A stretch of 63,590 nucleotides of DNA, counting the filler, from Pelomyxa schiedti (taxonomy: Eukaryota; Protista; Evosea), in assembly GCA_020536535.1 (NCBI GenBank). It is 12 parts of 12 records of this genome, joined end to end, with 100 filler letters (N's around TTAATTAATTAA, not from the genome) between each part and the next. Parts side by side here need not be neighbours in the genome. Positions count along the whole stretch, not along the records: positions 18,016 to 21,840 come from JAHLWZ010001674.1; 11 more parts are not named here. One strand, written 5' to 3'. A model generated the notes under the pieces. The model did not search any database. It was not told the DNA's origin and saw only the letters and a list, made by a program, of their open reading frames with translations. The position numbers were made by a program, and so were the translations under genes. Numbering within the stretch: the stretch's first letter is position 1; every line of letters begins with the position of its first letter. Below, piece after piece: positions 18,016 to 21,840 of this stretch.

Positions 18016-21000
18016 TGGAGTGATTTGTGGGAGAGGATGATGAGAGGGAGTGGTGAGATGTCATCGAGGATCGCAGCGACCCTCTCAGGGGGTGCCTCTG
18101 GATCAATCGGAACGTATCCCGATCCCGTTTTCAGAACTCCATAAAGTGCAACGAACTGCTCGATTGATCTCTCTGCAATGATCGGGATGAGCTTCCCCGG
18201 TCCAACGTCTGGGAATGATGATTTGAGGAAGTGTGCAAGTTGGTTTGCTCGGTTGTTGAGTTCGCAATAACTGAGCACTTCGGTGCCAGACTTCAATGCC
18301 GGGAGATTTCCGTGGTTTGTGACAGACTCCTCAAACAGGAAGTGAACTGCCTTTCTCGTTTCTTCTGTGGTTGTGGTGTTGAACACCTTCTCTGTGGAAT
18401 TCCACACCGTAAGGCTCTTGACATCCGACTCATGGATAAAGGACAGCTGAGAGATGGGGCTGTCAGGGAAAGAAACAACACTCTTCATGAGAGTCTCCAT
18501 GTTGTTACCAAGGCGAATAACTGTTGAGTCATCAAGGATATCCTTGGCGAATTCGAACTGAACTTCCAAAGACCCGTCAGGCTGTGGAACAGCATTGACG
18601 CCAAGGTCAAACTTGGACATGACCGGAGGTACGGTGTAAAGGAGCTTCACGTCTCTGATTCCTTCCATGGCGAAGTTCTTCTTGTCCATGAACTTCCAGT
18701 CATCCATCACGAACATGACCTGAACGAGTGTGTGCATGCTCAGCCTCTTCTCAACGTGAACAGCTTCCACAATCCAGTCCAACGGGACATCCTGTGCCTC
18801 TTGTGCGGCGAGAACCCTGCTTTTCACCGATGCCAGTGTTTCCTTGAACGACTTGGATTCTTCAATGGTGGTTCTGATGGGGAGTGTGTTCACGAAGAAC
18901 CCAATCAGAGATTCCACACCAGGGTAATGCCTGTTCGCCGTGGGAATCCCAACAACGATGTCACCTTGTGGATTGGATGGTGGTGTTGTTCCTGTTGTTG
19001 CTGATGCTGTTTCTTTGGCTTTGTCAGTCTCTTTGGACCACCTTGGACTGTGAAGGTGCAAAAGGATGTTGAACACAGTGAGAACTGTCATGAACGGTGT
19101 GGCTGTGCTCATGCTCTTTCCCAGTGTTGTCAACGCCGAAAACAGTGACGGTGGGATCACGTGGATGTGGAATCCAGCGGAATAAGTCCGGTTGTCAGTC
19201 CTTGGCCTGTCGAGCGGAAGTTCGCAAACTTGATTGACTCCCTCGAGTTCCTTCTTCCAGAACGACAGTTGCTTCTCTTTCAGGTTGTTGTTGTTGGAAG
19301 TGTTGAGGAGCAGCTCCCTTTGCCAAACTGCAAAGTCAGAATACTGAAACGGCAACGCAGGTGGTTCCGGAGGGATTTGCTTCTGAGCTGCGATTGGTGG
19401 TGATGACAACACCACGCGGTTGTATTGGAGAGAGAGCTCCCTTGTGAAAACAACCATTGACCACCCATCCGTGATGATGTGGTGTGCAATGAAGAAAAGA
19501 ACGGTCTCTTCCTCGTCAAGTCGGAACAGGGTGAGCCGCAGAAGGGGCCCTGATTTTAAGTCAAAGGGAGTGCCCACTTCCTTTTGAAATTCCCCATTGA
19601 GCCACTTCTGTTTTGCTTCTTCAATACCGCCTTGGGCTGGTTTGGAGTATTGCACTTCTCGGAACTGGATCGCGTTCTCGGCATCCTGAACAGGGAGGAT
19701 CAACTGAAACCCTTGGGCGGATGTTGACGGTGGTGTTGACCCTTCTTCCTCGTGTTCTGTCACGAACCTTGTGCGGAGGCTCTCGTGTCGAATCACAACA
19801 GAGAGTGCTGCGATCATCAGAGCACCACCGTCAATGTGCCCAAACAAATGGGCACCACCAAAGACAGAGTACTGAACCGAGTTCGGCTGGAGCTGGTCCA
19901 GGAAGAACAGCCTGTGTTGTGTCAGTGACAGCGGCGCGATCCTCTTGTTGTACGGGGGTGCCGACGATGACAACGGTTTGATTGGTGGGAACTTGAACTT
20001 TGTTGCTGAGTTGGTTTCGGCGAGGAGAGCCGCCATAGACCTGATTGTTCTGGATGCGAACAAATCGCCGAGGTTGAGGCTCAACCCTCGTCTGTCAGCG
20101 GATGCAATTGCCTTGAGCATTCCGATTGAGTCACCACCAGCCTCGAAGAAGTCCTCATCGATCGATGATGGTTGCGATGGGAGCACCTCGCACCAAATCT
20201 CGAGAACCTTTTTCTCCATTGGTGTCAGAGTGTCTGTGTCAATTTTCGGCCTCGAAGGTTCTGTTGATGAATCCTTGGGGGGTTCATCACGAGCGGTGAC
20301 ACAGTTGATGAGGGCGGATCGCTTCTTGAACACAGAGGCGCACAAGGCGTGAGTTAAAAACCCAACACCCGGTGGTCCGAAATCAAATATCTCGACTGCA
20401 TCACATCCTTCCTTGTGTGCCAGAATCGCTCTGTTCATGTGTTAAAAGTGAAATAAAAATGGGGGATTTTAACTGGACAGTTTCCGTCCAATTGATTGGG
20501 AGTCCCATTGAGTCCATGTGAACTTGGTCACAATAAGGCTGCGTGTCCCACTTCACACAAAATACATGTTAATTGTCAACCAAGATCAAGAGGGAGGAAG
20601 GCGTGAACAACCTGTGATGTGTCCGCATTTAAACTTGTGCTGAAAAATGCAGCACTGATTGGAACTGGTTTCCAAAGGGAGTACTTTGCGGCTGGGATAC
20701 CACCAAGGAAATTTTTCAAAGCTTCAGATTGATAAAACGGTGCATGAAAACCCTCCGACACTGGCAGAACTTTGACTTGATGTGGAGGAAACAGACTCTG
20801 CAGTTTGGCCAGAGGAGTCGGGTGACCTGGAAACCAATGAATCAGTGAATGGAAGATGGAATATGGAACAAAGAGGTGGTGGTACAAACCAGAGACAACC
20901 GACTGGGTGGGTGTCAACCTGATCGACACAAAAAGTGGTGTTGAGGGAAACTCGGAATTCACAGCTTCAATGTGCTTCTCAAGCGTGGCAACTGGAACCT

Positions 21001-21840
21001 TGAACATGCACATCCAACTCTTGGACATCACTTCTTTCCCCCACTGTTTGTTGTGTGCCTCAAGGGCTGAAAGGATCAAACGAAATCCTCTTCTGGCCCC
21101 GTCCAAGCAAATGGCTTGAAATTGGGCCACTGATTCTGCATTTTGGAAAACGTTAGCATTCCACGTCACAAAAGGAATTCTGTGGAACCTGCTTTAAGGA
21201 TGGCAGATGCCGGTGTTTGTCCAGCAGAATAGCCCACACAGACATCAAATGACCTCGCAAAAGCCAAGAATTTCTTGTTTCCATCAGGGTCAGCCTCATC
21301 AGTGGAGCCTCGTTCAAGAGCAGAAACAAGGAAACATGCACAAGAATATATAATTTGCAGTGGGATGCAAAATAAAGGTGTCCCAAGAAGTTTGTTTGGT
21401 GGCCGGCTCTCTCGCTCATGAACCCTTTTCCAGCAATTAGTTATAATTTTATTATAATTAGAAAATACTATCATATTATTTATAGTAGATTGAGCTTTAT
21501 TTTCTTCTGTTGGTATTATTCGTATTTTTAATAACGGTCAGGTCGGTCAGAGTTGTGTATCGGTGCGTTGTTGTCACCACAAAAAGCCAAAAAAAATCAA
21601 AAAAATGAAACCAAAATACATCAGAGCATCCCACAATTTCGTTTGCGTGGCGATGTATTGCTTGGTTGGAACATACCAGGAGTGAGGATCGTATTTCCTC
21701 GCGATGGAGCCGTCGCCGTTTGGCCTGAAGAACGCGTCTGCGTCGGGACCCACCGCGTCGCACAGCCGGTTCATCGTTATGGGTTTGTTCACCGTGTGCG
21801 ACATCCCATCGCACACACCGCGGATCCACGGTCCCACAAT
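18016..21840 (-). CDS. Partial NRPS with starter acyltransferase: SAT/AT - thiolation - condensation - adenylation (both ends off contig)
   Basis: AT: YDPHSWVHERESRPP..LFCIPL, GYSAG, VVSGHP, LPVSEGFHAPFY, PINW, IFDFGP. T: FFEAGGDSI. C: RHESLRT, HHIITDGWS, IGFFVNTLP. A: LSYCELNNRANQLA, LKTGSGYVPIDP. Introns at 21425-21676, 21136-21188, 20827-20889 (in frame, uncertain), 20551-20611 and 20431-20473. Confidence 0.9.

Follow-up and report, generated by a model that had tools for sequence, protein, structure and literature searches.

A starter acyltransferase fused to the front of a nonribosomal peptide synthetase gene in the amoeba Pelomyxa schiedti

Can a nonribosomal peptide synthetase (NRPS) carry in the same polypeptide a starter acyltransferase (SAT) that would prime its first carrier domain? 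The step is of consequence, as the way in which an assembly line is primed decides which lipid cap a lipopeptide receives and is a main target for engineering. The question is raised by a gene of Pelomyxa schiedti on the minus strand at positions 18016-21840 of the window, the whole stretch of 63,590 nucleotides analysed here, joined from 12 parts of 12 records of the assembly GCA_020536535.1; this piece comes from record JAHLWZ010001674.1. The original prediction, made from the sequence alone, read it as an intron-containing gene of a probably anaerobic amoeba, in which a SAT of the fungal fatty acid synthase (FAS) type is followed in frame by carrier (T), condensation (C) and adenylation (A) domains. 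We found the gene to be real and transcribed, and to belong to an expanded family.

Structure and transcription of the window gene

The gene consists of six exons and five GT-AG introns, about 1,117 codons in all (Table 1); the exons join in phase and free of stops, the reading frame remains open at either edge of the piece, and G+C content is lower in introns than in exons. Four to five introns had been claimed, and the motifs behind the original prediction (GYSAG, FHAPFY, PINW, DFGP, GGDS and HHxxxDG) all lie where it had placed them; chance occurrence of the motifs was rejected. The catalytic motifs of the SAT, the GYSAG nucleophile elbow and the FHAPFY His motif, are intact. C, A and T, with their core motifs likewise intact, stand in one polypeptide, as defines an NRPS, and share a single exon with the end of the SAT. 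About 105 residues of the A domain lie inside the piece, whose edge cuts it before the specificity pocket; at the other end about 45 more codons are expected upstream of the edge, where the paralogues P0002 and P0003 begin, 10-15 residues before the SAT.

The stretch is present in four public runs of one study, whose contigs carry neither strand nor expression-level information. In the single-cell run X3, one contig of 1,156 nt spans 21385-20013 with two mismatches and without introns 2-5, covering exon 2 at 21189-21385 and joining SAT exons 2-5 to the entire T domain. Since it is near-identical to the window, it belongs to the window copy and not to the paralogues, which are 78-84% identical. 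Introns 2 and 3 are likewise removed in run X4, and it should be added that intron 3 is spliced out even though it is in frame and without a stop. The SAT-T fusion is transcribed; separate genes for the SAT and for T-C-A are ruled out by this RNA joint, and a bacterial contaminant by the spliced introns and by eukaryotic neighbours in the paralogous loci.

The proposed check of the junctions by RNA succeeded for introns 2-5, and exon 1 with the joint of intron 1 had no coverage in the RNA contigs. The donor of intron 1 is found at the same phase-2 position of a Trp codon in five Pelomyxa loci and in a eukaryotic metagenome contig (L010, see below), and the intron is also backed by the gene model of P0002 and by the 80-89% identity of exon 1 to the paralogous loci. 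At 21429-21665, a contig of runs X1 and X2 matches both ends of intron 1 and not its interior, and probably stems from a second allele or a paralogue; numerous variant letters at other places likewise point to several similar copies.

The paralogue family and the identity of its first domain

With the start of exon 6 as query, close matches were proteins of Pelomyxa schiedti only, in agreement with the anaerobic amoeba proposed as host, and paralogues match the window exons at 70-89% identity per exon. At least five SAT-T-C(-A) loci are present, the window included (Table 1); L003 and L012 are 99.4% identical and were counted once. In the paralogues the SAT is the N-terminal domain. No ketosynthase (KS) was found upstream of it in their loci: the genes there are eukaryotic and unrelated; in L004, an assembly gap right before the SAT hides its start. 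An ordinary PKS-NRPS module of the order KS-AT-ACP-C-A (PKS, polyketide synthase; AT, acyltransferase; ACP, acyl carrier protein) was rejected on this ground. The second C domain of P0005 runs off its contig, which makes at least one copy multimodular. Within the fused copies, all of which end at contig edges or gaps, no release domain (thioesterase, reductase (R) or terminal C) was found. The motif-anchored A pockets of P0003 (DGLLIAHCCK) and P0005 (DAFFMGACSK) differ and keep the amine-binding Asp; the latter looks hydrophobic.

For the identity of the SAT, the window exons were queried one by one and the whole domain was represented by the database paralogues. Taken singly, the SAT exons of the window matched nothing in Pfam or in PDB. 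The anticipated Pfam profiles were matched by two routes: exon 6 itself matched PP-binding, Condensation and AMP-binding, and SAT (PF16073) was reached by way of P0002, P0003, P0005 and P0006, which score 28-37 bits against a cut-off of 22.8. The SAT identity of the window gene follows because these relatives match each of its exons at the identities given above. A whole paralogous SAT had no match in PDB by phmmer, and a three-row SAT profile reached E ~0.5 only. A profile of five Pelomyxa SATs and the L010 exon returned residues 204-393 of fungal Fas1 first (E ~2e-4) and then PksA; this was the cleaner test, another profile having included the SAT of a fungal non-reducing PKS (NR-PKS) and being biased to that group. 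The atlas put the domain among SAT and FAS-AT clusters (0.96-0.97).

The fold was assessed on a predicted model of the paralogue P0010 (predicted local distance difference test, pLDDT, of 75; 7-row alignment), a single-sequence AlphaFold model being unusable (pLDDT 35). Similarity was highest to the Fas1 AT (Z 29.3 and 27.6), followed by the mycobacterial FAS AT (Z 25.3), NR-PKS SATs (Z 24.6-25.0) and extender ATs (Z at most 23.4), and Foldseek ranks 1-13 were all fungal FAS. As modelled, the paralogous SAT fold is closest to the fungal Fas1 acetyltransferase, and nearer to Fas1 AT and SAT than to extender AT. Profile and fold together bear out the Fas1-type starter acyltransferase of the original prediction. 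A fungal-type FAS as such is excluded, as enoyl reductase (ER), dehydratase (DH), malonyl/palmitoyl transferase (MPT), ketoreductase (KR) and KS do not accompany the AT.

The nucleophile elbow is GYSAG in most SAT copies and GYCGG, with Cys for Ser, in P0005 (L004:10320-10350); this Ser/Cys elbow is kept in every copy covering it, and so is the His motif. Ratios of nonsynonymous to synonymous substitution rates (dN/dS) of the SAT against L003, L012 and L002 are 0.26, 0.28 and 0.45, and those of T, C and A lie at 0.10-0.27. By these ratios the SAT is under purifying selection, constrained and yet freer than T, C and A.

Table 1. Features of the window gene, in window positions, and domain content of its paralogues
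Feature	Position	Strand	Description
Exon 1	21677..21840	-	N-terminal SAT part; 5' end cut by piece edge; 80% identical to P0002 residues 45-98, 89% to L003
Intron 1	21425..21676	-	252 nt, GT-AG, phase 2 inside Trp codon; predicted
Exon 2	21189..21424	-	SAT; nucleophile elbow GYSAG at 21234-21220
Intron 2	21136..21188	-	53 nt; joint in RNA runs X3 and X4
Exon 3	20890..21135	-	SAT helix after nucleophile and small subdomain; 83% identical to P0002
Intron 3	20827..20889	-	63 nt; joint in RNA runs X3 and X4
Exon 4	20612..20826	-	SAT; catalytic His motif FHAPFY at 20749-20732
Intron 4	20551..20611	-	61 nt, phase 0; joint in X3
Exon 5	20474..20550	-	SAT; PINW motif at 20499-20488
Intron 5	20431..20473	-	43 nt, phase 2; joint in X3
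Exon 6, full extent	20430-18016	-	SAT end, T, C, start of A
Start of exon 6	20286..20430	-	SAT end, DFGP at 20384-20373, then Pro/Ser/Thr-rich linker
Carrier domain T0	20022..20210	-	PF00550, E 9e-12; phosphopantetheine Ser in GGDS, 20138-20127
Condensation domain, LCL-like	18420..19943	-	PF00668, E 3e-67; C-terminal boundary approximate; HHxxxDG as HHIITDG, 19484-19464
Adenylation domain, N-terminal part	18016..18335	-	PF00501 positions 1-94 of 384; core A1 at 18275-18243
P0002			SAT-T-C
P0003			SAT-T-C-A
P0005 (L004)			SAT-T-C-A-T-C; full A-T present
P0001/P0011			SAT split off in annotation; all six exons in L003 at 82-89% identity
P0010 (Pelo_7205, L009)			Apparently free-standing SAT
L005			SAT cut at contig end

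Several annotated models in the family depart from the reading given here. At L003:6410-9539, L012:776-4420 and L002:1625-5236, NCBI models split the SAT from T-C or, where a contig ends, close the protein with a spurious last exon, either of which conceals the architecture. In P0005 the annotated C-terminus (L004:16200-16589) looks like a gene-model artefact: the frame stays open and encodes a C domain up to the end of the contig. Preceded by a GGDSI carrier, this second C domain appears DCL- or fungal-like by eye, the PDB ranking being uninformative. The free-standing SAT Pelo_7205 (L009:10001-11589) ends in two stops after a Pro/Thr linker, and a partial copy of it, 98% identical, lies on the same scaffold (L006:10001-10722); it may act in trans as a loader or be a truncated duplicate. 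At two loci a major facilitator superfamily (MFS) transporter gene stands head to head with the SAT-NRPS gene (L003:2367-6139 and L004:6690-8788), possibly as exporter of the product, and in L004 an aminotransferase gene lies about 9 kb upstream. Furthermore, P. schiedti has another NRPS-annotated protein, Pelo_9594, with a predicted peroxisomal SKL signal (PMC8887013, supplement 1).

Proposed loading of the first carrier

The class of the C domain bears on how T0 may be charged. In the PDB ranking, Txo2, Txo1 and 5u89 came first (1e-59 to 1e-51), ahead of surfactin 8f7h (6e-16), CDA-C1 (2e-8) and the 7c1h series (3e-4). We take the former three to be elongation-type (LCL) and the latter to be starter-type C domains, and by this ranking the C domain of the window appears elongation-like rather than a starter C. 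Being elongation-like, it would probably need a donor on an upstream carrier; since T0 has no A domain of its own, the SAT remains as the candidate for its loading.

In the mechanism that we propose, a phosphopantetheinyl transferase (PPTase) would arm T0, and the N-terminal SAT, by the chemistry of its family, would take an acyl group from a thioester donor, most simply acyl-CoA, onto its own serine and pass it to T0. The A domain would activate an amino acid and load the next carrier (T1), and the LCL-like C domain would join the acyl group on T0 to the amine, so that later modules would receive an N-acyl-aminoacyl chain. SAT-T0 would do what FAAL-ACP (FAAL, fatty acyl-AMP ligase), a separate acyltransferase or a starter C does elsewhere. 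The annotation of P. schiedti includes a PPTase (Pelo_7030; supplement of PMC10579272), and fungal FAS is known to load acetyl via the AT domain of Fas1 (PMC5353594).

Among known systems, the ATs of Fas1 and of mycobacterial FAS-I share the motif series of the Pelomyxa SAT, are its best fold and profile matches and prime a carrier with a starter acyl group; they sit with ER, DH and MPT and serve a ketosynthase, whereas the Pelomyxa SAT, only about 15% identical to them, is fused to a carrier and a C domain. The SATs of NR-PKSs (PksA, CTB1, CazM) are N-terminal starter-selecting transacylases of the same family PF16073, with a GXCXG elbow seen also in one Pelomyxa paralogue; their order is SAT-KS-MAT-PT-ACP, whereas in Pelomyxa a carrier of its own directly follows the SAT and a KS is absent. 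Transferase and carrier are also paired at the N-terminus of bacterial modular PKSs (DEBS, avermectin), in which an AT-ACP didomain loads the starter, albeit with ATs of the extender or FabD type, which are weaker matches to the Pelomyxa SAT and feed a KS, not a C domain. The T0-C-A start itself is that of EasA, a fungal lipopeptide NRPS (emericellamide; with EasC and EasD), for which an acyltransferase was proposed to move the acyl group of an acyl-CoA onto the first T (PMC3901194). There the transferase is a separate protein, and in Pelomyxa it is fused in cis. We assume that the transferase of the EasA system is not of the SAT family.

An N-acyl peptide would also be the outcome with FAAL-ACP-C-A (PvdL type) and starter-C systems (SrfAA, CDA, RzmA), and the T-C-A part aligns to the NRPS/PKS profile PRK05691 from position 581, which presumably is the carrier after the FAAL domain. 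The Pelomyxa gene differs from both in having no fatty acyl-AMP ligase and a C domain outside the starter class. Lipoinitiation by a starter C is ruled out by the position of C after T and by its rank among elongation C domains, and lipoinitiation by FAAL-ACP by the acyltransferase fold that precedes T. In its working the gene resembles the fungal T0 and the FAAL-ACP-C starts and is a member of neither. The original prediction had called this initiation unusual; the fusion in cis and the use of the SAT family at an NRPS start are indeed the new part. The gap in what was known was slightly overstated, since fungal lipopeptide NRPSs also start T-C-A, with T loaded in trans.

On balance we regard it as fairly probable that the window gene encodes the first part of a multimodular NRPS equipped with a loading unit of its own, in which the SAT transfers an acyl group from acyl-CoA to T0 and the C domain caps the first amino acid; the related SAT-ACP pair that starts a PKS in L010 was counted in its favour. 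Several points weigh against it: every fused copy runs off its contig or into a gap, which leaves the end of the line outside the sequence; the SAT evolves faster than T, C and A; its sequence similarity to Fas1 is weak; the fold is that of a modelled paralogue and not of the window protein; the residue that parts malonyl from non-malonyl transferases could be Leu or Arg; and chemistry, donor and product are all inferred.

The main alternative, in which another synthase completes a fatty-acyl, polyketide or peptidyl chain and the SAT moves it from the carrier of that synthase to T0, appears unlikely, if still to be reckoned with. NR-PKS SATs, which rank just behind the Fas1 AT in fold, receive hexanoyl directly from an FAS dedicated to this supply, or a tetraketide that a reducing PKS has made (StcA, AfoE; PMC3901194), and the GYCGG elbow of P0005 resembles their GXCXG (PMC8582187). 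Moreover, the start of Pelo_9594 is ketosynthase-like by eye, and an LCL-like C domain may favour a donor that is larger or aminoacyl. Against this, the best matches by fold and by profile are to the CoA-using Fas1 AT, and no partner synthase adjoins any locus read.

Direct loading with malonyl-CoA or another dicarboxylic acyl-CoA in the window subfamily, which would give an N-malonyl-type cap, seems improbable. After the serine, positions +28/+29 read Arg-Gly in the close loci and Val-Gly or Leu-Gly in other paralogues; the former resembles the carboxylate-binding Arg-Gly of malonyl transferases such as FabD. The residue that admits or excludes malonyl is R1834 in MPT and I306 in the yeast AT (PMC5353594); its equivalent would be Arg (+28) if the helix were one turn shorter. 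No gap interrupts the alignment to Fas1, however, from the elbow up to and including the conserved Asp-Ser helix cap, so that Leu (+32) falls at I306, and G-F-R-L of the window aligns with A-F-R-V of a fungal NR-PKS SAT. Similarly small is the likelihood that the SAT is a relic without loading activity or a hydrolase with an editing role, T0 being loaded in trans by another enzyme. Its sequence varies more than the remainder of the protein, a free-standing copy exists (P0010), and SATs can reportedly be dispensable in basidiomycete NR-PKSs; this reading is at odds with the retained elbow and His motif and with a dN/dS well below 1.

Distribution, history and meaning

Searched against 1.84 billion representatives, the three-row SAT profile returned seven proteins: five of Pelomyxa, one SAT of a fungal NR-PKS and one metagenome exon. 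The last lies on the 87-kb eukaryotic contig L010 (ENA ERZ21831265 ctg79796l), in an intron-containing modular PKS (L010:9652-18541, also in L011) of the order SAT-ACP-KS-AT-DH-ER-KR-ACP-KS, cut at the contig end. By motif anchors, three of its four introns, as predicted from sequence, fall at the codon positions and phases of Pelomyxa introns 1, 4 and 5. Because these three positions are common to both, the comparison suggests an inherited SAT-carrier loading unit used before both PKS and NRPS.

No SAT-T-C-A protein was found outside Pelomyxa, and the architecture did not turn out to be widespread in searches that miss distant SATs fused to long proteins. No SAT relatives came up in pattern scans of viral contigs, JGI metagenomes or GTDB genomes, nor in plasmids by tblastn; close kin alone are detectable in this way, and a wider SAT alignment yielded no usable pattern. 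The atlas, in which small clusters are uncovered, held no cluster with the set SAT-T-C (best score 0.77). Titles and abstracts, with subscription papers mostly outside coverage, gave nothing relevant on Pelomyxa NRPS or SAT-initiated NRPS, the accessions of L010 turned up in no paper, and the main texts of two Pelomyxa genome papers do not mention NRPSs.

The A-T part of P0005 is 26-38% identical to its best listed relatives, the highest being a C-A-T-R protein without SAT from Mastigella eilhardi, a close relative of Pelomyxa (P0110; EukProt EP01105); reductive release may be the termination mode of the SAT-NRPS family. In the A-domain tree, Pelomyxa and Mastigella form one side of a branch (99/100), and in the C-domain tree they group at 89, unstarred and on long branches; comparison rows were bacterial-type matches only, and long-branch effects and missing eukaryotes limit both trees. 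The related Mastigella A domain suggests that the NRPS family predates the genus Pelomyxa.

What emerges in Archamoebae is an NRPS family that is expressed, has expanded and is long resident, and whose SAT escapes standard annotation, as NCBI models detach it or leave it unnamed in several copies. As a more tentative proposal, somewhat less likely than not, an old and portable eukaryotic SAT-carrier unit, related to the Fas1 acetyltransferase, would prime both NRPS and modular PKS. The Pelomyxa copies would have diversified in their choice of starter and amino acid and would make a family of acyl peptides, the targets of which may be prokaryotic symbionts, food bacteria or competitors. The fused SAT-T0 unit would be a further route of initiation, compact enough to graft, and the architecture points to an unstudied means of producing acyl-capped peptides.

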